Source: Blastocystis sp. Blastoise (Eukaryota; Protista; Bigyra: Opalinata). Taken from it: a stretch of DNA of 64,000 nt. Shown here piece after piece: positions 39,200 through 64,000 of this stretch. Position numbers and translations under genes: made by a program. The stretch lies in assembly GCA_039096225.1 (NCBI GenBank), contig JBBPEB010000009.1:1674001-1738000 (forward strand). The letters are read 5' to 3'. The notes beneath the pieces were generated by a model. That model saw only the letters and a program-made list of their open reading frames with translations. It had not been told where the DNA came from and made no database searches. Position 1 is the stretch's first letter, and the number at the start of each line of letters is the position of its first letter.

Positions 39200-40627
39200 A
39201 TGAATATAGAAAATATATCCGAAAATGATAATACTATTAGTATTCCCCTTCCTGATCTTGATATTCTTGATTCTAATTTAACCCTAAATCAAGTTCTGAA
39301 TCATCCTGAAGTTGAGAAAGAAAGAAGTCCTAGAAAGAAGTCCTGTGCTATAAGAAAAGTGTTTAATGGAAAGAATGGTATGAAGAAATTATCCTTATCT
39401 AGTATTAGTGCTATCACTAAAGTGTCTCCGTCTACAATAAAACGTTCTGAAAAGAAACTGAATGAAGATGTATCACTTAATAATCGTGGTAATCAACATG
39501 TTCTTAATGAAAATGAAGAAGTAGAAATAATAGAATGGATTAAGTCACAAATTAATGTGAATAGCTGTCCTTCGAAGAATGAAATAGCTGAAGAAATACG
39601 TAAGAGATCAATTGAAAGGTGTCGAAACGGTATTGGATGTATGATTACTGTATCAGAAGGGTATGTAAGGAAGCTGCTTAAGAAGAATAATATTCTATTG
39701 AAAAGACCGCTAACAAATTATGAAGAAAAAGCTAGACCAACAAAGAAAGATGCGAAGATACTGTATAGGAATATTCATTATGTAATAAACAAAAGAAAAA
39801 TCAAAACTTCTCTTATATTCAACATGGATGAGTCATGGGTTACTCCTGGTGATAAAAGATCAAGAGTTACTGTTGCAGTTGATAATGATCACTTACCAAT
39901 AACAAAACAAGGTACTAGTGTTACTCATACAACACTAATTGGTTGTATTTGTGCTGATGGTACTGCAGTTCCTTCCTCTTATGTTGTTGATCGAGATACT
40001 TATAATATTAAAGAAATAGATAAGCAAAATCTGTCCTATATAAAAGTATGGTCTGCTAAGTCTGGATGGATAAATACACATGTGTTATACTCATGGATTC
40101 AAGATATTTTTCTTCCATATGTTAATAAAAAGAGAAAAGATATGAATCTTGATAGTACTAATGATTATTGTCTACTTATTCTTGATGCTCATACAACACG
40201 TAATGATACTGATTTTCTTCGTCTATGTGAAAATAACCGTATTGATGTTATTGTACTTCCTAAAAATACTACTAGTGTCTTTCAACCGCTTGATCTAGTT
40301 ATATACAATGTTTATAAATCAAAATTTAGAAGATATTATAAAACAACTAATCGATATTCGTTATTAGCAGCATCTGAAGATGCTTTTAGTGAAGCTTTTA
40401 CAAGAAGAAACATTTTAAGTGCATGGCAAGCTTCGAGACTTCTTATTGATGATGAGAATGAGTTTATCAAGGATTTTGATGATCGTCCCCGTAGTAAAGT
40501 AACTAGAAAATCATCTAAAGTGTCAAATAAAATCTTAACTAATATCAATAGAGAAATGATGGAGGATGAATTTAGTGATAAACTTGATAATACTGTTTCA
40601 GAAGATGAAATAATAGTTAATGAATAA
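39200..40627 (+). CDS. DDE_1 (pogo/CENP-B-like) transposase, intronless
   Basis: CENP-B-like HTH region, then FNMDESW, LILDAH and FQPLD, with 35 residues between the last two Asp. Confidence 0.95.
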   Translation: MNIENISENDNTISIPLPDLDILDSNLTLNQVLNHPEVEKERSPRKKSCAIRKVFNGKNGMKKLSLSSISAITKVSPSTIKRSEKKLNEDVSLNNRGNQHVLNENEEVEIIEWIKSQINVNSCPSKNEIAEEIRKRSIERCRNGIGCMITVSEGYVRKLLKKNNILLKRPLTNYEEKARPTKKDAKILYRNIHYVINKRKIKTSLIFNMDESWVTPGDKRSRVTVAVDNDHLPITKQGTSVTHTTLIGCICADGTAVPSSYVVDRDTYNIKEIDKQNLSYIKVWSAKSGWINTHVLYSWIQDIFLPYVNKKRKDMNLDSTNDYCLLILDAHTTRNDTDFLRLCENNRIDVIVLPKNTTSVFQPLDLVIYNVYKSKFRRYYKTTNRYSLLAASEDAFSEAFTRRNILSAWQASRLLIDDENEFIKDFDDRPRSKVTRKSSKVSNKILTNINREMMEDEFSDKLDNTVSEDEIIVNE

Positions 40628-48126: not shown

Positions 48127-49011
48127 AAAGAATAATAAATTACTATTTCTTTTTTATTTCTCTCTTTATATATATTGTTTTCTTTTCTTTATTGAGAAAA
48201 GTTTTTCATTATATATATATTATTTTTAATAAAATATAAAAAGTAGTTTTGTTAATTGTTTTCTAACTGCATTCATACTATTAAAAGTTTATTAATATTA
48301 ATTATTATATAATATTCTCAAGATAAATATATATTTTTTATTAAAAATAATTTTTATAAACATGTTTATTTTATAGATATATAACAAAGATTAAGATATA
48401 AATCATAAGAATAAAATCAATAAAATATATGAAGGATAGGAATTCTATGATAATAATAAACATCAATATATTTTGTTTATTTAAATAATTAAAAACAATA
48501 CTTATTGAAAGTTTAAAACAATATAGAGTTATCTATAATATAAAATGAAAAATGTTTTTATTCTTTTATTTATTAACAATTTAATATTTTTTATAAACTA
48601 TAATAATAGGAATATTATATATATGAATATATATTTATATAATATATATATAATTATATCATTGTTGAAAAAAAATAAATATAAAAATGATTAAAATAAA
48701 TATATAGAATGATTATTATTTAAAAAAATAAACAAATTCAAATAAATATTTAAAATAAAACTAAATAAAGTTTTTAAATATAAAAAAAAATAATTTTAAA
48801 CAAGAATAAGTTGAGAATAGTATAGAATTCATGAATAGTATACAATTTACAAAAGTAGCCAAATGAACATTTTAATAGTATTTATAACTATTATAAAATA
48901 AGAATGATTATGAAAATAGTTTTTATTATGATGAAGAGTATAAATATAGATGAATAATAGAATAATATAGAAAATTTGAATAAATAATAAAAAAGATAGA
49001 TTTGATGAGAT

Positions 49012-49190
49012 CAGTCCCTTCCCTCACTTTTGTGACAGTTGCCATGACCATGGCTGACTGTCACTTTCAGCCAGACTTAATTTGACTTAGTCAAAAATAA
49101 TTCAAATTACACTGTCAAAAATAAATATTTTGTCACAAATTTTGGTGACAATTGCCATATGGCAAAAAAAAAGGGCCTCAGGGAAGGCGT
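49012..49190. other. GC-enriched multi-hairpin island of unknown class (MITE, element end or structured RNA)
   Basis: Outer inverted pair CCTTCCCT/AGGGAAGG encloses four hairpins or palindromes built from TGACA and TGCCA motifs. Confidence 0.6.
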
Positions 49191-49343
49191 TATATATATA
49201 TATATATATTGTTTGTATAATATGTATCTATTATATATAATAATAATAATATATATATAGTACATAAATATTATATAGAGGATGATTCATCTTATTCATT
49301 TGTAGGTTCATTTGATCTATTTAATATACTTAATACCTTGATA

Positions 49344-49387
<44 letters not shown>

Positions 49388-49699
49388 CTAACAATAAAAA
49401 TTTATAAGAATATATATATATAGAGAGAGAGAAAATAATTCAAATATTAATCATTAAATAGCTATTTGAATGCTATTCTATATATATTCAATATATCCTA
49501 TATTTGGTCTTTATTATTTAAAAAGGAAATATTTTTTGGAATAAATGAATTGAATATTATATTTGAATTTTTGTTTTTAATAATAAATTATATTTGAATA
49601 TTTTTTATGTTAAAAAATATCTTATTAGTGAATATATAAATATATCGATTAATATAAAATATATAATATTATCTAAGAAGAAAAGAAATAAATTGTTGT

Positions 49700-52900
<3,201 letters not shown>

Positions 52901-53029
52901 TTATAATTAAATTGTATTATATATATTTATATTTATTTAAAGTCAACAAAATTATATATAAGAAATAGTAATTATAAATATATTTATTAAAAATATCATA
53001 TATACATAAAATAATTTATTTTTCTTTAT

Positions 53030-53270
53030 TTAGGTGATATAAAAAGAATTTATTAACGTTTAATTGTTCAAGATCTAAATCTATATTATCATAATCAAAA
53101 TTCCTATATATATATATATAAGAAACTATTGTATATATACATTTTATTTATTTTTTTAATATTTTTTTGAAACATATTATATTCTTTGATAAATTGTTGA
53201 ATCATTCCAAATATAAGAATTGCATTGTTATTATCATAAGATTTATCACACTTTATATATAATATTTATT

Positions 53271-53306
<36 letters not shown>

Positions 53307-53950
53307 TTTTTTATATTGAACAATAATTTTTGATGTATTAATTTTAAATAATCTATATATATATATATATAGATAATTATATCAGAATAATTAAATATAC
53401 TTTTTCATTTGATTTATAATTTGATTAAGATATTTATCATTTCCATTTTCAAATTCAAAAAAATTATATATATTAATTGTAAGCGTTTTCTTTTTATCAC
53501 CATTTGATAATTTATTAATTATTAAATAATATCTATCTTTATTTCTATAATAATATTAATATATATATATATATATAGATTAATACTTTAAATAGATTGT
53601 AAATATAAAAAATATTGGTGAATTGGAATTAAAATGAATCTGAATTTCATCAGATATATTATATAACTATATATATATTATTGTTAATAATAGGTATATA
53701 TATATATATATATATACATAAGAATCATTAATAAAATCATTATAATTATAGTAGTTATGAATGAATAAATTTATATTATTGGTTGTTACAATTTGGTTAT
53801 AAACATTCAAATATAAATATATATCAAATAATTCACTTGGAAAAGATCCTTCATGTAAGAATGTATACTATATATATTATATTATATTATATTATATTAT
53901 ATTATATTATATTATATACATATTGTTTTTCATTAACTATTATCTCATTA

Positions 53951-54024
<74 letters not shown>

Positions 54025-56118
54025 TATATAATACTAATTAGATTATATGTTTGTTTATTATTTATTTGTATAGGATCATTTTCATATTGACTATTTTGAC
54101 TATTATTATAACAACTAGCTGTATATATATATATATATAAATATTATATTATTATATTATATACATTATATATATATATATTATATTATATTATATTATA
54201 TATATATATACAAATATTAATATTATCATTTGAATAATTTATAGATAAATTTGATGATTGATTATGAATTTCTTTGCTTATATCATTATTTTCAGATAAT
54301 GAAGTATAATCATATACATCAGTAGGTATTATATTATCAGCATTAATATTATCAATATTATATTTAATAGATGATTGTATATTAGAATTATTAGCTGAAA
54401 TTATATTAGCTGAAGATTGGTTATTATTTTGAATAACTTTAGATGCATATTCATTAGTATTTTGAAGTTTTTGGAAAGAAATATTATTACTATTACTAAT
54501 TATTGGATTAGCCAAATTATTATTGATATTATTTAATAAGATATTAGGAGATGAAGAAATTATATTATCATTACTACTAATTATTGGATTTAATGAATTA
54601 TTGTAATTGATTGATGAATTAAGATAGTTATTATTATTTATTAATGGATTTGAAGAACTGTTATGATTAATGAATGAATTAGAAGAATTATTATTATTTT
54701 GATTATTAATATTGATTGATGAATTAAGATAATTATTATTATTGATTGATGAATTAAGATTGTTGTTATTATTGATTGATGAACTAAGATAATTGATATT
54801 ATTGATTGATGGATTAGAAGAATTGTTATAATTGATTGATGTACTAGATAAATTATGATTATTATTTACTATTGGATTAGATAAATTATGATTATTATTT
54901 GATATTGGATTAGATAAATTATGATTATTATTTGATATTGGATAAGAAGAATTGTTATAATTGATTGATGCATTAGATAAATTATGATTATTATTTGATA
55001 TTGGATAAGAAGAATTGTTATAATTGATTGATGTATTAGATAAATTATGACTATTATTTGATATTGGATAAGAAGAATTGTTATAATTGATTGATGTATT
55101 AGATAAATTATGATTATTATTTGATATTGGATAAGAAGAATTGTTATAATTGATTGATGTATTAGATAAATTATGATTATTAGTTGATATTGGATAAGAA
55201 GAATTGTTATAATTGATTGATGCATTAGATAAATTATGATTATTATTTACTATTGGATTAGATAAATTATGATTATTATTTGATATTGGATAAGAAGAAT
55301 TATTAATGAATGAATTAGAAGAATTATTATTATTTTGATTATTATTGTTGATTAATGGATTAGATAAATTATTTATTATTTGCTTAGAAGAATTATCATT
55401 GATAGAATTATCACTATTGGAAATGATAGAAATATTAAACTGATCAATATCTTCAACAGAATTATGAATACTTGGAATTGGAGAATAATAATTATTTAAT
55501 ATATTATTAGGGTTTAGATTATATTGATTATTTAATGAATCATTTATACTATAATTATTATCATTGTTATTAGAATTAAATGAAGGAAGAAGAAGAGGAG
55601 AAATAAGTTCTATACTTTTTTTATTTTCATCATCATTCATACTATTGAACTTTATAATGGGAGATATAATTATAGGAGATATTTGTTGATCTGATAATTT
55701 AATATATTTATTTTCATTGTTACAATTATTTATTTTAGCACTATCTTTTGATTCCATCTATGGGATATATATGATAATATGAATATACATGAATAAAAAA
55801 TATGAATATGAATATGAATATGAATATGAATATGAATATGAATATGAATATGAATACATATGGATAATATGAATATACATGAATAATATGAATATGAATA
55901 TATATGAATATGAATATGAATATGAATATGAATATGAATATGAATATATATGGATAATATGAATATACATGAATAATATAAATAATATCGATAATAAAAA
56001 TAATATGGATAATATTGATAATATGAATACTTTAGATGATATATCTTCTTTTGATTCAATATAACGATTTATATCATAATTGAATGTACACTTTCTAACC
56101 AGTAATTCATATGAGCAA

Positions 56119-56179
<61 letters not shown>

Positions 56180-57516
56180 TATCTACATACTAGAGCTTCA
56201 TGAATGGTTATTAGGTTACCATCAATATCTCTTTCTGGGACAAAATAATTCATTTCTTTAGCGAATTGTTTATCCAGGACATAATCAATGAATACTTTTA
56301 TACCAAGCTCAGAAGTACATAAATCATTTAATTTAAAATCATTATTATTATATATAGTTTTATATTTTATATTTAGATTATAGTATTTGTCATGAACATC
56401 ATTTGTATGATGGCAACTTCTGATGAAACTTTGGCAATAAAGAGGATTAACACAATTTGTTCTTCCAAACCAAGTGGCAAAACAATGTCTATAGGAATAA
56501 CCTGAGTGATCTTTAGGTATGTTACTAAATAATTTTTTTAATTGATGTTTACAACTATATAGGTATATAAGTTAATATATATATATATATATAGATTTAG
56601 ATAAATATATATATATAGGTATACATAGTGGGATAGGTACTATATGTGAATTGGGATGCTACATAATTACTATTAGTATTTGGTTTTCGTATATATAGGA
56701 ATAAATTTGTTGTATATTCAATATCATTATCTTTTAAATATTCACATATTTGATTTCTTATAATTATATATTTATCATATATCTTTTGAAATTTTTCGCA
56801 TAAAATATATATATCAGGAAATTTCTTGCCGTCAGAATAAGGAATATTTCCATTCTTAGATCCTGTATGTATTATATATATATATTCTTTTTTAGTATTT
56901 TCATTTCTATATTTCTTTAGGTTTTCAAATAATTTCAAATTATATATATCATTATTTCTAAGTGGACAGCCTGTGCAAGTCTGAAGGAGATACATCATAA
57001 GAATCGTAATAGTATGAAATTTTTTTATATATATATCATTAATATTTTTCTTATTATTAATTTCTTCTATATATATATTAATTTTTTCAAATAATGTTCT
57101 AATTATATTGTAGTAATCTTGTAAAGAGATAAGAGCTTCCATTTTCTTTTTCTTATTCAAATCCTCAAAAGCTTTACTATCATTTTTACTAATGAAATTG
57201 TTATCTGTAATCATAACTGAAGACTTGTGAGTAATATATGTTAGTGTTTCTTTTATTATATCTTTCATTTTATTATCTATATATACATTTTTTCTTTCTA
57301 TATAGGTAATTATAGATCTTATCTCTTGTATTCTATTATGAAGGGTTTTTGGACAATTTGATCTGGGCAGAATATTTAGAGTAACGTATTTATATATAAA
57401 ATCAGGAAATAGTAAAATATTCAAACCATAATGATCAAGTTCTTCCTGATATAATACAAAAGCAAAATTGATTATATCACAAATACTAAGCATAATTTCA
57501 TAACTATATATATATA

Positions 57517-57556
<40 letters not shown>

Positions 57557-57873
57557 TACAAAATTTGTTTCTCAGATAGAGAATATATAGATATATCCGG
57601 TATTTTATCCTCAACCCCGTTTTCATAGAAGTCTCCAGTAATCACAGATTTAATTAAAGGTAAAGCATATTTTATAAATATTTTTGTATTTGTATCCATT
57701 AGTAGAATTCTTTTTCTACTACACTTTCTTTGATATTTCCAATATTTTATTATATTATATAGGCGACTAATATCATCATCACTTAATCGTTCTGGTAAAA
57801 AGCAACCAAGAAGATTTTTATTTATTTCTAATGATTTCTCACCAAGATTTATTCTTTCATTTAATTTTACAGG

Positions 57874-57926
<53 letters not shown>

Positions 57927-58229
57927 TTCTTAATTCTTGAATTATATTTAATGATACTTCATTATTTTTCTTTTTCTTAATTATCTAGAATTATTATATT
58001 TATTAAATGTATATACATATAATATATATATAGATACATATCCTAATTGCAGATATATATAGGTTTGAAGATCCAAATCTTTTACAAGTAGTGGGTTAGT
58101 AATAATCTATAAATTAAAATTAAAATAAATATGATTATTATTTAAATATATACATGTTTAGTATAGTTTGTATCCGAGTTCAAAATTAAATTACACAAAT
58201 TATTCATAAAATCCTGTATATATATATTA

Positions 58230-58283
<54 letters not shown>

Positions 58284-58653
58284 GATTTTAAATATACTTC
58301 ATTATCATCAAGATTTATTTTGTATTGCTTCAAAAAATTATATATTTCTGATCTTATCTATTGAGTATATATATATATAAATCAAAAAATATTATTTTAA
58401 AATATATTTATACTTCTTCATCTATTTCATTATTATTCTTAATTATATTTTGAATATCTATATATCGTATGAATTATAATAATAATAATGCATTTAATAT
58501 ATAAACAATTATTACTTGATAATGTATATAGAAATGTTTTGAGTTCTTCTGAACTTATTAGAATTTCTTCATCATCTTCTTCTTCATTATTTTTAATTGC
58601 TAGTGGTATATAGTCTATTTTATTCTTATTTGATATAATTTTCCCATTATCAT

Positions 58654-58706
<53 letters not shown>

Positions 58707-60240
58707 GTGAGTCTATATCAATTACATTATCTTGAATTTCGTCATTATTCTTGTTAGAATTGAATTTATAAGATTGATTATTATTTATCTTAATAGAATC
58801 ATATTCTTTATTATCTATAGATTTCTTTTTTATTTTTATATTTTTATGTAGAATCGGTGAAAGAAATGATGCTTCAATAGGAAATTTATGACAAACAGGT
58901 AATTGTTTATTTGTAGAATTGGGATTACATTGATTATTTAAATTATTATTAGATATAGTAGATTTAATAGAATTATTAGAAATTGATATAGGTGGAGAAG
59001 GAGATGAATGAAAATTATTGATAGATGAATTATTATTATGATTATTATTAAAAGTTGATATAGGTGGAGAAGGAAATGAATGAAATTTATTGATAGATAA
59101 ATCATTATTATTATTATTAGAAATTGATATAGGTGGAGATAGAGATGAATGAGATTTATTGATAGATGAATTATGATTATGATTATTATTAAAAATTGAT
59201 ATAGGTGGAGAAGGAGATGTATGAAATTGATTAATAGATGAATTATTATTATTATGATTATTATTAAAAATTGATATAGGTGGAGAAGGAGATGATATAG
59301 AAGATGGAGATGAATTAAATTTATTGATAAATGAATTATTATTATGATTATTATTAAAAATTGATATAGATGGAGAAGGAGATGAATGAAAATTATTGAT
59401 AGATGAATTATTATTATGATTATTATTAAAAATTGATATAGGTGGAGAAGGAGATGATATAGAAGGAGATGAATTAAATTGAATAGAATGAATAGAAGGA
59501 GATGAATGAAAATTATTGATAGATGAATTATTATTATTATGATTATTATTAAAAATTGATATAGGTGGAGAAGGAGATGATATAGAAGATGAAGATGAAT
59601 TAAATTTATTGATAGATGAATTATTATTATTATGATTATTATTAAAAATTGATATATGTGGAGAAGGAGATGATATAGAAGGTGAAGATAAATTAAATTG
59701 AATAGAATGAATAGAAGGAGATGATATAGAAGGTGAGTAATATAGATCACTATTCATATATAATGGATTAGGGTCTTTAGATAAAGGACTAGGAGGAAAA
59801 GAAGAACAAGAAGAAGAATCATCGATCAAAATTGTATTAACTATATATATTATTTATGAAATGAAAATTATATTATTATTAATGTATATATATATATATA
59901 TATTACAATTATTATTTAATATTTTTTTATTTTGTTTTTGAAATTTATTGTTATTTGAAGATGAGATTTCTATTTTATTATAATATTATTATAGTATATA
60001 TATACTTTTTTTAGGTGTACTTGATTGACGAGTTTTTTCATAAGTAGAATCAATAGATAATTGTTGAGTTTCTAGTATATCATTTTTAAAACGATTGTTA
60101 TTTTTTTTGATTTTATTATTTTTAGTATTCGCTATAATTTTAATAATTGATATATAGATTTATTAATAATAATATATAAAATATTTTTATATTTATATTA
60201 GATACAATCAAATTGATTAATACTTATTTGGTTTTGCTAT
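53030..60240 (-). CDS. Large spliced tyrosine recombinase (phage integrase fold) with N- and C-terminal Asn/Ser repeat regions
   Basis: Splicing intron 56555-56624 joins TGCPLRNNDIYNLK...GSKN...NLF to HSGYSYRHCFATW...CHHTNDVHDKYY, giving R-K-(Y)xxR-H-Y. Further in-frame junctions link it to the 54186-55757 exon. The 5' and 3' limits are uncertain. Confidence 0.82.
54840..55290 (-). repeat. Coding tandem repeat, about 60-nt unit (NNHNLSNTSINYNNSSYPIS)
   Basis: Repeated units in the 523-aa ORF. Confidence 0.9.
55770..55980. repeat. Intronic (GAATAT)n compound satellite
   Basis: Lies within the intron at about 55758-56030. Source of the HI/YS-repeat ORFs. Confidence 0.9.
58970..59735 (-). repeat. 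Coding tandem repeat (SPSPPISIFNNNHNNNSSINxFHS)
   Basis: About 9 units in the 390-aa ORF. Confidence 0.9.
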
Positions 60241-60394
60241 ATAAAAATAAATAATTTATTTATCATGTATTATGTATATTATATCATACAATTCTTTTCA
60301 TTACTATTAAATAAGAAAAATAAATATTGTTATTTATAACTAATTTTTTTCTGAATAGTTTTTTTTAATCAATTATATTTTAATATAAAATAAA

Positions 60395-60558
60395 AACTGT
60401 AAACAAACTGTATATTAACTGTATATTAACTGTATATTAACTGTATATTAACTGTATATTAACTGTAAATAAACTATATATTAACTGTAAATAAACTGTA
60501 TACTAAATATAATTAAACTGTATACTAAATAAAATTAAACTGTATATAAACTGTATAC
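60395..60558. repeat. 11-bp tandem array (AACTGTATATT consensus)
   Basis: About a dozen copies, degenerating towards the right end. Confidence 0.9.
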
Positions 60559-63500
60559 AAAATTTTTCTGATCAACGAATGGTTTATATATATAGGATTT
60601 AAATATATTTTTAAATATAATTATTATATATATATATGTTTTTATATATCGTACATTATTTTTTTCCAGTTTAACACATTTAGAATATAAATTTATAAAA
60701 ACTTAATTATTTGAAAAATAAAATAATTAATACTAACCCTGTTGATACGATGACAATCAGTATCAGTATCATTTCTATTGTTAATTATATTTATTTTTTA
60801 TTGATGATTATATATATATTGTTTTTTATTTATGTATATAGTATATACTTTATAAGTCAAAAGAATAATATTAAAAATTAATTAAAAATTTTATAAGAAT
60901 ATCATCTATATTATGACTTATTCTCTTTGAATATGGTAGTTCTTTGATATATGACACCATTTTATTCTATGTATATAATCTAAAGATTATAAATATATAG
61001 ATGAGATTCATTTAAATATCATATTTCAGGATATAGAGCATAAAATTGTCGATGAAAAATTATAAAAAATCTTGCATCAAAAATCATTTTTTTCAATCAT
61101 AATTGATCCTATCAACTCATTCACACAAATTATAACACTTTTAAAGCTATATTATATATATACATGCTATTTAGATATTTCTTAGTAAATATGTTTCTTT
61201 AAAATATACAAGTCAAAGAAAATCGTTTAAGAAATCGATAGTCTAAAAAATAATATCATAAAAAAGTCATAACCACATTTATTGATTATATTTCTAGCAC
61301 TTTTAAATGCTATATATATTTATGACACTGTTGTTATTCTATAATAAAAGAATTATTATTATTAAATAAAAAATGATAGAGGTATATGACTTTTATTAAA
61401 GAGAGGCAAAAAAAAATTAAAAAAACTTAAATTTCTTCTTTTCATTTTTGATACCCTAGATAATGAATTTTGAAGCAAATCTGTTCGTATGCATTTAATA
61501 CATGATATAGCTTAGTAATAACTAAAAATAACAAATTTAGAAGACAAAAAAAAACAACATATTGCATTTTGACCCAATGTCGACTTGTCAAGATAAATCT
61601 ATTAAAGTGTTATTTCTTATGTATGGACAATGCTGTATATGAATATAAACGATATAAAGCCATTTAACAACATTATCCTAGTTAAAAGACCCTTTTTCCA
61701 ATCTTGCCAAAACTGATTCATTTTGTGCGAAAATTTTTATTTTTTTAATTGCTACTTTTCTCAATGATGGATTGTCGTTATATTATGTTTGACACCAAAA
61801 AATATATCTACGTTTTATAAACTTTATATCTAGTATGCTTTTATATTATTATTCTGAAAATGGAAGACACTATTACAATAACAAGATTAAAAAAGTGATT
61901 GATCATGATTTTTAAATAATCAATGCTACTGATCTCATTTTTGAACTAATATGTCTTAAATATATAAAATATGTATCTATATGTTATCCTTATTCGATAT
62001 TGGTGTCTTTCATATATATTTAATATATTTTTATTGGTGAATGAGTTAAAAGAAACTTGAGTATGCAAATTAATCTTTTCTAAAAATTTCAGTTTTTTAA
62101 ATCTCATTCGTAAGTACTCATTTAAGTTATATTTAAAAATTATGAATATACATATGTGTACTAGATCATTATTACTATCTATTTGATATACATATATGTT
62201 TGAATAAGGACGTTTTTCAAAACTGATGTAAATGCTGACTCAAGTAGAAAAGTATAAGTGTGTTATTCTAAACACATATCATATGTATTTTAGTTTAATA
62301 CACATTTTAGAAAGCATTTGGCACAGCATTCTCATTTCGAAATGTTAATTTTTCACTTTTAAAGAATCTAGTTGTAAGAAAATGTTCTACAGGTCAAAAT
62401 ATCTACAAAAAGTAAAAAATTGTGAATATTAATATTGTTTAATAGTGACTAAAAAGAAAATAAAAATAAATTGAAAAACAAATTATTTAAATAAAAAATA
62501 GAAAATAAAGAATTCTAAGAGATTTCTAGAATTCTAAAAGAAATGAAGAGAAAAACAGTCAACAATTTTAGAGTCATTTCAAAAATCAAAAATTTAATTA
62601 GAAAAAACAATATTTTTAAATGAAATATAGTTTGTTTTCAATACTTTATTATGCTATATGTAATCTTATATTTAGTAAAAGCTCGTTTAAACAGTCATAG
62701 ATACCTATATAAATTTATATGAAAAGTCATTCTTATATTATTTTTCTTAATTAATTATATGACTTTTTTTGAACACAATATTTGACCTCATAATTGAGTA
62801 TATAATATATGTCACATATCAAGTGTATTCAATCAAAACCTAAAAATATATTTTAATTGCTTTGAAGAATAGAAATGACTTGAAGATTTACTTGTTTTGT
62901 TATTTTAATAGAAATTAGATTTTAAACAAAAATATCATACTAATATATAAAAGATGATATGTAACTAAATATGAAAACTATATTTTTGATATTATTTATT
63001 ATATAATCGTTGAATGAGAAGAGTTTGTTTCTTTTTCTTTCTTTCACTTTTTATTCTTATATTTTAATTTCATTAGTTTATGTTATATTGATGATAAATA
63101 CTATTGTAAGGTAATTTAAAAAATATATCTTTAAGTATACAATTAAGAAATAATAGGCTCATTCTTGTTAATTTAACTTTCATCAAAATTTTATATATCA
63201 AAAAATTGTTTATTATATATTTTGCTATGTCTATATAGTCATCCACCTTCTTTCACTTTTTTTCATTAAATATTTTTTTATTTTCAAATATTAAACAAAC
63301 AGAATTTAAACTCATTCTTAAGACATCCAACATTTGTAAATATATATTTCCTTAAAACATTCACAAGAGTTATTCATTGTTTTAGTTTCATTCAAATCAA
63401 TAAAAAATATTTCAATAATTTGTTTTTATTTTCTAATATTCTCTTATAATCAAGTATTAAGTGTTGTTTTACAAATTGACTAATAATCATCTTTTGTATT

Positions 63501-64000
63501 CATAGACTAAACGATATATTATATATTTCTATATCTATTGATAGTGTTTTATTCATGTATGATATTCTTAAATTATTATATATTTTAATTTTAAGATATA
63601 TTCATTAAATTTAATTCTTAATCTTTTTTGTTTTGTTTTATTATCAAAGAATAAAGATATTTTATTTTATATATAACATTGAAACATTGTTAGGAAGCTA
63701 AACAAGTAATTTTTAAATAATAGTTACTAAAGCAAAGACACTTAAACAACACATTTGTTTTATAACAAAAAATATAAAGTTATTTATTTTATATACTCAC
63801 ACCTTATTCCAATATACATATTATTATAACATACTAATATACTATAATGAATGATATATTATGTCAATAGTCTCTGATGAAATATCATCATATTTTCAAC
63901 ATAATGATAAACAACAATGTATATAAACAATATTCTTTTTTTTTTGAAATTTCTTGTAAGTATTAAAGTTAATTATATGTAGCTATTATAGAATAAAAAG

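Follow-up and report, generated by a model that had tools for sequence, protein, structure and literature searches.

The window analysed here is a 64,000-nucleotide stretch of contig JBBPEB010000009.1 from Blastocystis sp. Blastoise, a Blastocystis of the tortoise gut. On its minus strand lies the gene WA158_000888, whose public protein KAK8809945.1 (Blastocystis sp. 'Blastoise', 1848 aa, annotated only as 'hypothetical protein') was mapped exon by exon; the whole gene occupies 53019..60301 in about 21 exons, from the start codon ATG at 60301-60299 to the coding end of the last exon at 53019. This is slightly wider than the extent of 53030-60240 given in the initial annotation, which had also called the recombinase-like gene hidden; such a description suits the ORF track but not the public annotation, where the gene is modelled. 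The gene family is unmentioned in the genome paper. In the ORF track, TGCPLR (R codon 56957-56959) and GSKN (K codon 56855-56857) were found in the minus-strand ORF 56597-57493. The corresponding exon, 56625..57503 (minus strand, aa 646-938), encodes a helical N-terminal part as well as the first half of the recombinase-like core, with Box I (TGCPLRNNDI) containing R827 and the hairpin (TGSKNGNIP) containing K861. The putative catalytic core is then interrupted by a 70-nt GT-AG intron of phase 2 at 56555..56624 (minus strand; GT at 56624-56623, AG at 56556-56555), across which the frame is kept. The second half of the core is encoded by an exon at 56191..56554 (minus strand, aa 938-1059) that is absent from the ORF track and is directly followed, after 56191, by a further donor GTATGT. 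Its translation includes ...GYSYRHCFATWFGR...SCHHTNDVHDKYY..., in which Y957-S-Y-R960-H961 (R codon 56488-56490), H986-H987 (56407-56412) and Y995-Y996 (56380-56385) were identified.

When the sequence was re-read, every codon named in the initial annotation (R, K, YSYRH, HH, YY) lay exactly where it had been placed, and the unlisted exon with its in-frame intron was borne out by KAK8809945.1, which has the identical junction (...STYPT-I-CKHQ...). Only intron models supported by RNA-seq were retained in the annotation pipeline (PMC12129017). The intron-rich gene and its 56555-56624 intron are real. The predicted Asn/Ser arms were likewise present, as two minus-strand low-complexity exons stand either side of the core, one Asn-rich (54213..55757, aa 1090-1604, 63/189-nt tandem repeats) and the other Ser/Asn-rich (58705..59838, aa 58-435, 72/141-nt tandem repeats). 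Eight short exons at 53019..54116 (minus strand) encode a non-repetitive C-terminal domain (aa 1606-1848), for which no match was obtained in Pfam, PHROGs or NCBIfam.

The candidate catalytic residues R827, K861, Y957-x-x-R960, H986/H987 and Y995/Y996 follow one another in canonical order and spacing (R to K 34 residues, K to YxxR 96, R to H 26-27, H to Y 9). This is the R, K, HxxR, H/W, Y arrangement of tyrosine recombinases with Tyr as the first His, precisely the layout that had been proposed for the protein. The order and spacing match those of XerC/XerD, lambda Int and Cre (PF00589), and TG..LR..D[IL]..L, G.K...IP and RH.FAT come close to the local XerC/XerD motifs TG.R..E/D-L, G.K...VP and RH.FAT. 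The canonical enzymes differ in having 22-23 residues from R to H instead of 26-27 and a first His where Tyr is found here; moreover, the Blastocystis core is intron-split, lies inside an 1848-residue repeat-rich eukaryotic protein and obtains an insignificant profile score. In a MAFFT alignment, R827 and P866 fell on columns in which XerC/XerD/FimB/FimE/lambda Int have an invariant R and an invariant P, and K861 is a candidate lysine whose identity is uncertain from this alignment and from the paralogues.

An ordered four-block motif test was carried out with lambda Int, Cre, FimB/E and XerC/D as references; the real score was reached by 41 of 5000 shuffles (p ~0.008), and the blocks landed on R827 and Y957..R960. 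When the genome was searched with an R-H-x-F-A-T DNA pattern, 22 matches were obtained as against 1 for the control, indicating that the recombinase-like motifs exceed chance; 17 of the 22 belong to the recombinase-like family. With ESM Atlas features, exon B alone scored 0.95 (PF00589, Phage_integrase, in 9/30 matches, plus one Phage_integr_3) and residues 770-1010 scored 0.97 (PF00589 in 12/30 matches, plus one ResT/TelK, the top clusters being from Preplasmiviricota viruses), where shuffled proteins attain 0.95-0.97 about once in 100 and a third of them also obtain ten same-clan matches. A collinear hhalign alignment of 157 columns placed R, YxxR and H on catalytic columns, but with P = 0.28. 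Residues 640-1075 look like a very divergent yet conserved tyrosine-recombinase-type core, of which the fold and the catalysis are predicted.

The assignment as a tyrosine recombinase was upheld only indirectly, as in the residue layout, and not by any significant profile match. Searches of Pfam, PHROGs and NCBIfam with an E limit of 10 matched no tyrosine-recombinase profile (PF00589, PF16795, PF16684, DUF3435 and others), and the Pfam hit of the spliced protein to PF00589 or DUF3435 that the initial annotation had envisaged did not appear. A Starship captain was rejected on the same ground, the DUF3435 domain not being found in Pfam. A PDB sequence search with the protein gave no recombinase match; a six-frame PF00589 search of the Blastocystis genome recovered 12 other loci, the recombinase-like family not among them; a custom HMM scored -1.2 bits, and 132 of 2000 shuffles were equally good. 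AlphaFold2, run on the single sequence without homologues, gave a pLDDT of 35.7. In a library of 1.8 billion cluster representatives, derived from ~15 billion proteins, no sequence relatives were detected, which agrees with the earlier idea of a new class, the family having no detectable sequence relatives outside the Blastocystis genome. These negative HMM, profile and PDB searches, together with the behaviour of shuffled proteins in the Atlas, would be expected if the protein were no tyrosine recombinase at all and the motifs had arisen by coincidence in a fast-evolving, lineage-specific protein of a different fold. Such coincidence is, however, opposed by four motifs in the correct order and spacing at the above p value, and by two Atlas queries pointing to the very family that had earlier been predicted from motifs alone.

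The diverged paralogues speak against coincidence as well. They share 59% identity in exon A and 78% in exon B, and the two core exons match them as separate blocks with a spacer of ~270-500 nt. Box II (GYSYRHCFATW) has the identical protein sequence in them, its 7 differences all being synonymous, with 0 replacements; SCHHTNDV is retained, and Box I reads TGSPLRNSDL with its R retained. The hairpin pattern around K861 was searched for in the paralogues and not found. It is clear that the conserved stretches coincide exactly with the putative catalytic boxes, and we regard a merely coincidental set of motifs as improbable. Among 12 copies the core exons vary by 0.16-0.43%, whereas the non-coding flanks in the unit vary by 1.4-8%, so that the core exons are ~10 times more conserved than the non-coding DNA of the unit. 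The low-complexity Asn exon, 0.22% different between copies, is as conserved as the core, and gene conversion may therefore add to the identity of the copies. On comparison of these sequences, the motifs and their selective conservation can be counted as demonstrated.

The gene was found to be the sole evident coding gene of a subtelomeric unit of 18-25 kb, whose in-window part covers 49190..64000 (blastn against 11 other copies, 93-97% identity). Beyond the window the unit runs to C3:1741085 (TTAGGG x2), followed by a 1-kb palindrome-bearing segment and then the terminal telomere; unit homology in blastn extends up to the telomere. A copy-number survey, as the initial annotation had suggested, revealed 13 near-identical intact copies in the genome, all 7-84 kb from chromosome ends, at about nine ends and in uniform orientation with the 5' end of the gene toward the telomere. 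Five further copies are diverged or broken, three of them at or near chromosome ends, and every copy has kept its introns. The copy survey turned up no dispersed insertions. Neither RT nor RNase H was detected in the 1795/1848-aa protein by Pfam or in the unit, in line with the earlier observation; long ORFs elsewhere in the unit, terminal inverted repeats, and capsid, packaging or replication genes were not seen either. A one-gene unit with a recombinase-like core and without visible RT, RNase H or terminal inverted repeats is what an ordinary Crypton-type DNA transposon with genome-wide insertion might offer. The previously proposed 'Crypton-like' nature nevertheless gave way before the confinement of all intact copies to telomere-bounded units near chromosome ends and before the failure to match any Crypton-related Pfam family, and Crypton membership is scarcely credible. 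The single orientation of the unit at about nine chromosome ends argues for a telomere-linked element instead. Membership of the DIRS/Ngaro/VIPER-TATE group was rejected too, given the lack of RT, RNase H and other long ORFs and the retained introns.

The boundaries of the unit are made of telomere sequence. Contig ends consist of 0.4-1.6 kb TTAGGG arrays, and short internal telomere tracts (12-60 bp) coincide exactly with unit boundaries. The proximal junction is constant, TTAGGG followed by A9-TATAAT in every internal unit, the start of each unit falling on one and the same nucleotide behind the tract. The distal ends are variable and capped by telomere repeats, ending at the terminal telomere or at a short internal tract plus the next unit, and they resemble healed breaks. 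Units form tandem arrays at C26 and C13, and perfect 43-bp palindromes are limited to the telomere-adjacent kilobase of each unit. Most of this could also be produced by a passive subtelomeric family like yeast Y', spread and homogenised by homologous recombination or break-induced replication alone, with copying primed from eroded telomeres at internal TTAGGG tracts; copying begun in such a tract would yield the constant proximal junction. The protein, whatever its fold, would then be dispensable for spread and would have another role or none. The short tracts, the healed-looking ends, the tandem arrays and a near-identity that extends to low-complexity exons all fit passive spread, but it leaves unexplained both the purifying selection on a recombinase-like active-site pattern in two 59%-identical lineages and the far greater conservation of the core exons over non-coding DNA. 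We hold it to be rather unlikely.

Our preferred reading, to which we give a probability of roughly 0.6, is that a telomere-associated DNA element has this protein as its recombinase, the fold, catalysis and role in spread of the protein being predicted. R827, K861, Y957 (replacing the first His of HxxR), R960 and H986 or H987 would form the candidate active site, with Y995 or Y996 as candidate nucleophile. DNA would be cut and rejoined via a 3'-phosphotyrosine link, the crossover would take place within or beside telomere repeats, and units would be added, excised or exchanged between chromosome ends. Against this, break-induced replication between ends accounts equally well for the short tracts and the healed-looking distal ends, no profile method detects a tyrosine recombinase, and Tyr stands in for the first His of HxxR.

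The nearest analogues, on our best reading, are Leishmania TATE and yeast Y'. TATE is the telomere-associated transposable element of L. braziliensis and other kinetoplastids, of the VIPER-like group; in Leishmania braziliensis it encodes a tyrosine recombinase and occurs in tandem clusters at one relative position within telomeric hexamers (PMC6681497). The likeness, one of described features, lies in the recombinase and the fixed position, each Blastocystis unit beginning directly after ...TTAGGG. TATE, however, is a retroelement and carries gag-like, RT and RNase H ORFs, whereas the Blastocystis unit has no RT or RNase H and keeps its introns. Yeast Y' elements encode a helicase and spread by homologous recombination. 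They resemble the Blastocystis units in having one long ORF, near-identical copies present singly or as several in tandem at some ends, short internal telomere tracts between copies and a fixed orientation to the telomere. The Blastocystis ORF has a recombinase-like core in place of the defining helicase, and the likeness is thus of architecture only. To our knowledge, recombinase-encoding elements tied to telomere repeats have been known solely as retroelements (TATE). What is new here would be a telomere-bounded DNA unit whose sole gene encodes a recombinase-like enzyme that selection has maintained. In a telomere-to-telomere assembly the unit is present at about nine ends, which makes it a tractable case for two questions: can telomere repeats serve a site-specific recombinase as its crossover site, and do elements of this kind contribute to the building or repair of chromosome ends?

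In ResT and TelA an additional active-site tyrosine stands three residues ahead of the box II arginine, a feature described as special to these two (PMC11317167); in ResT it was read from the cp26 record as Y293-x-x-R296. The Blastocystis protein has this Y-x-x-R in common with them, with R to H of 26-27 residues as against 28 in ResT, and the single ResT/TelK match in the Atlas and the perfect palindromes add to the likeness. The protein might thus be a nuclear eukaryotic functional relative of hairpin telomere resolvases with a Y-x-x-R active site. It would act on the 43-bp palindromes or directly on TTAGGG tracts, and chromosome ends would be cut and resealed so that terminal units are created, resolved or moved; if true, this would mean enzyme-driven, telomerase-independent remodelling of eukaryotic chromosome ends. 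Blastocystis ends are, however, ordinary TTAGGG arrays and not hairpins, box II is Xer-like and not ResT-like, and hhalign of the protein to ResT and TelN found nothing. We consider this alternative highly improbable. Membership among the hairpin telomere resolvases themselves was rejected in view of the TTAGGG arrays, although palindromes, as hypothetical sites of the enzyme, are present.

The best Atlas look-alikes, Preplasmiviricota clusters, suggest a relation to the tyrosine-recombinase integrases of virophages and polinton-like viruses from language-model features alone, and the unit differs from such viruses by its lack of visible capsid, packaging and replication genes. In Halocafeteria, a related stramenopile, endogenous virophages lie in tandem close to telomere repeats, and some of them encode such integrases (bioRxiv 10.64898/2026.07.28.741278). 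Finally, an 11-nt tandem repeat of ~15 copies was found at 60390..60561, upstream of the ATG at a distance of 90-260 nt, and this could possibly be a promoter element of the gene.

Both TGCPLR and GSKN were found within a single minus-strand ORF (56597-57493), and a 70-nt intron, running from GT at 56624-56623 to AG at 56556-56555, joins this ORF in frame to the exon 56554-56191, the translation of which contains GYSYRHCFATWFGR and, farther on, SCHHTNDVHDKYY. The initial annotation had described an intron-split tyrosine recombinase at 53030-60240; every one of its codon coordinates proved exact when the ORF and the exon 56191-56554 were read from the sequence, and its observation is confirmed. 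When the exons were queried one by one, an exhaustive protein search returned a public protein that was identical across the first exon queried. The product of the window's own gene is KAK8809945.1 (1848 aa, "hypothetical protein"); its record shows the identical junction and about 21 exons spanning 60301 to 53019. Such public protein records were used for the whole-protein analyses. Only introns with at least three RNA-seq reads were retained in the annotation of this genome (PMC12129017), which provides indirect support for the 56624-56555 splice. The genome paper itself makes no mention of recombinases, telomeres or subtelomeres (PMC12129017). An 11-nt tandem repeat of about 15 copies was seen at 60390-60561, just upstream of the first exon.

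The window, from the tortoise isolate Blastocystis sp. 'Blastoise', occupies C3:1674001-1738000 of an assembly that amounts to 33.3 Mb in 34 contigs. GC content is about 20%, and contig C3 ends 4.6 kb past the window. An origin from Plasmodium or Dictyostelium was rejected, since both the telomere repeats and the NCBI record identify Blastocystis. Exon A (56625-57503, minus strand) and exon B (56191-56554, minus strand), which encode the first and second halves of the putative core, each matched 13 places at 98-100% identity, with distances to a contig end of 7-84 kb for all 13. At contig starts the copies are read from the plus strand and at contig ends from the minus strand, so that the gene always turns its 5′ end toward the telomere. 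A terminal copy was present at nine chromosome ends, with three copies in tandem at the right end of contig C26 and two on C13. By blastn, homology of 93-97% runs from 49190 (51159 in a second subtype) through to the telomere, and TTAGGG arrays 0.4-1.6 kb long occupy the contig ends. The gene family and its element are linked to telomeres and recombinase-like, a new variation on systems already known. Moving outward along the right arm of contig C14 (C14:1287350-1380664), one meets first a 5′-truncated copy, 84 kb in from the end, then another partial unit, then a cluster of palindromes (at 1312506) and lastly, 5 kb short of the telomere, a diverged paralogue. This order looks like successive terminal additions.

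Internal copies of the unit, that is, of the 18-25 kb of telomere-linked DNA in which the recombinase-like gene is the only evident gene, terminate in TTAGGG tracts 12-60 bp long, placed precisely at the limit of homology. Every unit that follows such a tract starts at a constant first nucleotide, with TTAGGG followed by A9-TATAAT. The distal ends are variable, falling at window-equivalent coordinates 59536, 63983 (four copies), 66718, 66794 and 67085-67100 (five copies), and look like healed breaks. From these boundaries, the full unit therefore has three parts, namely a segment of 1 kb, ORF-poor DNA of about 6 kb and an 18-kb block with the gene; the window's copy represents a subtype that lacks the proximal 7 kb. 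About 180 bp of GC-richer DNA (49011-49190), which adjoins the start of unit homology at 49190 and is missing from the other copies, may be a small inserted element.

The 1-kb segment contains three or four perfect 43-bp palindromes of the build (TAGAATCG)2-TAGA / TCTA-(CGATTCTA)2, three of which are located distal to the window at C3:1741204-1741634 (3204-3634 of L020, the stretch of C3 beyond the window). The palindromes gave 46 matches in the genome versus 0 for a control, all within the telomere-adjacent kilobase of the units, and they may serve for protein binding or recombination. Between them, at L020:3268-3708, lie four copies of a 29-nt repeated motif with a telo-box-like TTAGGGT. At C26:1273415-1274422 (L024), the roughly 0.9 kb between two internal TTAGGG tracts is degenerate and G-rich; it could be decayed telomere or a long-read artefact.

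It is clear from the protein that the candidate residues R827, K861, Y957-x-x-R960, H986/H987 and Y995/Y996 follow the canonical order, with near canonical spacings of 34, 96, 3, 26-27 and 9 residues. Close local likeness to XerC/XerD was evident in TG..LR..D-I..L, G-S-K...I-P and R-H-C-F-A-T, and MAFFT, unaided, aligned both R827 and P866 with invariant columns. A scoring test with four ordered blocks, derived solely from six reference proteins (lambda Int, Cre, FimB, FimE, XerC and XerD), had its highest-scoring chain at R827 and Y957..R960; of 5000 shuffles, only 41 did as well. In the ESM Atlas feature search, exon B alone (0.95) and residues 770-1010 (0.97) both led to Phage_integrase clusters; the top clusters were of Preplasmiviricota viruses, and one match was a ResT/TelK cluster.

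The Pfam comparison proposed with the initial annotation gave no recombinase match up to E = 10, and none was obtained at that threshold in PHROGs, NCBIfam or PDB sequences (Pfam and PDB were also searched exon by exon). A six-frame search of the genome with PF00589 (Phage_integrase) returned 12 other loci, seven of them over the cut-off, and the recombinase-like family was not among them; these loci (C22:950088-950639, C23:222079, C26:35156, C16:969262, C15:125826 and others) are other recombinase genes, perhaps belonging to endogenous polinton-like viruses. Our own HMM, built on the six reference proteins, gave -1.2 bits, a score equalled by 132 of 2000 shuffles and not significant, and hhalign was likewise not significant (P = 0.28). 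The relatives of lambda Int and Cre that were retrieved were 99-100% identical copies only, unfit for a diverse profile. Homologues outside this genome were absent from 5.8 billion clusters, 1.8 billion representatives, IMG/VR and JGI metagenomes; word-index protein searches gave near-identical same-genome copies only, exhaustive phmmer recovered nothing beyond the cluster of the family itself and a single, spurious repeat protein, and tblastn against phages gave nothing useful. Because there were no outside homologues, AlphaFold2 was restricted to a single sequence as input, and its pLDDT was 35.7, too low for a usable model. We consider the claim of a tyrosine recombinase likely but unproven. 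The probability that the protein has a recombinase-type core is put at roughly 0.8, and such a core may be active.

Three intact paralogues were found in the genome, with 59% identity in the first core exon and 78% in the second, and with the intron at the same position (about 270-500 nt). Their motifs were read through back-translated pattern searches, one pattern being too degenerate to inform, and the comparison covered box I, the K861 hairpin, GYSYRHCFATW and SCHHTNDV. GYSYRHCFATW was identical in the paralogues, with 7 synonymous and 0 replacement differences, as was SCHHTNDV, with 1 synonymous difference; box I reads TGSPLRNSDL, the arginine being retained, and the pattern for the K861 hairpin recovered nothing from the paralogues. 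Among the copies of the unit, divergence was 0.16-0.43% in the core exons, 1.4-3.4% in the non-coding parts and 8% in the proximal part.

In one model that fits the architecture, the enzyme would recombine the telomere tract of the element with that of the chromosome, the 6-bp repeat offering an identical crossover region for each step. Such a model would explain why the orientation is fixed, why the proximal junction is constant and why the active site is conserved. The architecture fits break-induced replication as well, in which an eroded end is rebuilt with units copied from another end, the copying starting in an internal tract, as with yeast Y′; short tracts and healed ends are then explained without any enzyme. 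A role for the enzyme is favoured because selection keeps the catalytic boxes.

The position of Tyr957, at the first His of HxxR, is unusual. Among hairpin telomere resolvases, ResT carries the same Y-x-x-R (Y293-F-C-R296 in the cp26 record), and a 2024 structure paper describes this second tyrosine as confined to ResT and TelA (PMC11317167). Box II of our protein is otherwise Xer-like, unlike that of ResT, and hhalign gave no match to ResT or TelN; the relation to hairpin telomere resolvases is one of likeness only, and the protein is not a member. A DIRS- or TATE-type retroelement was rejected since RT and RNase H are absent, as the initial annotation had argued against DIRS, and introns are kept in every copy. 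The Crypton-like reading offered in the initial annotation was not supported; a dispersed Crypton and a Starship were both rejected as the identity of the element. For the Blastocystis unit, the nearest precedent as a recombinase element within telomeric hexamers is TATE (PMC6681497), even though TATE is a retroelement. In the related Halocafeteria, endogenous virophages lie near telomeres and some of them carry such integrases (bioRxiv 10.64898/2026.07.28.741278), in agreement with the viral origin of the enzyme at which the Atlas result hints.

Two Ser-rich ORFs of 184 and 108 aa were also seen in the unit at 50097-51075 (plus strand), opposite in strand to the gene. A 475-aa ORF at 39200-40627 (plus strand), located some 9 kb to the proximal side of the unit, contains the transposase domain DDE_1 (PF03184, E = 3.4e-19) and is probably a pogo/Tigger-type transposon.
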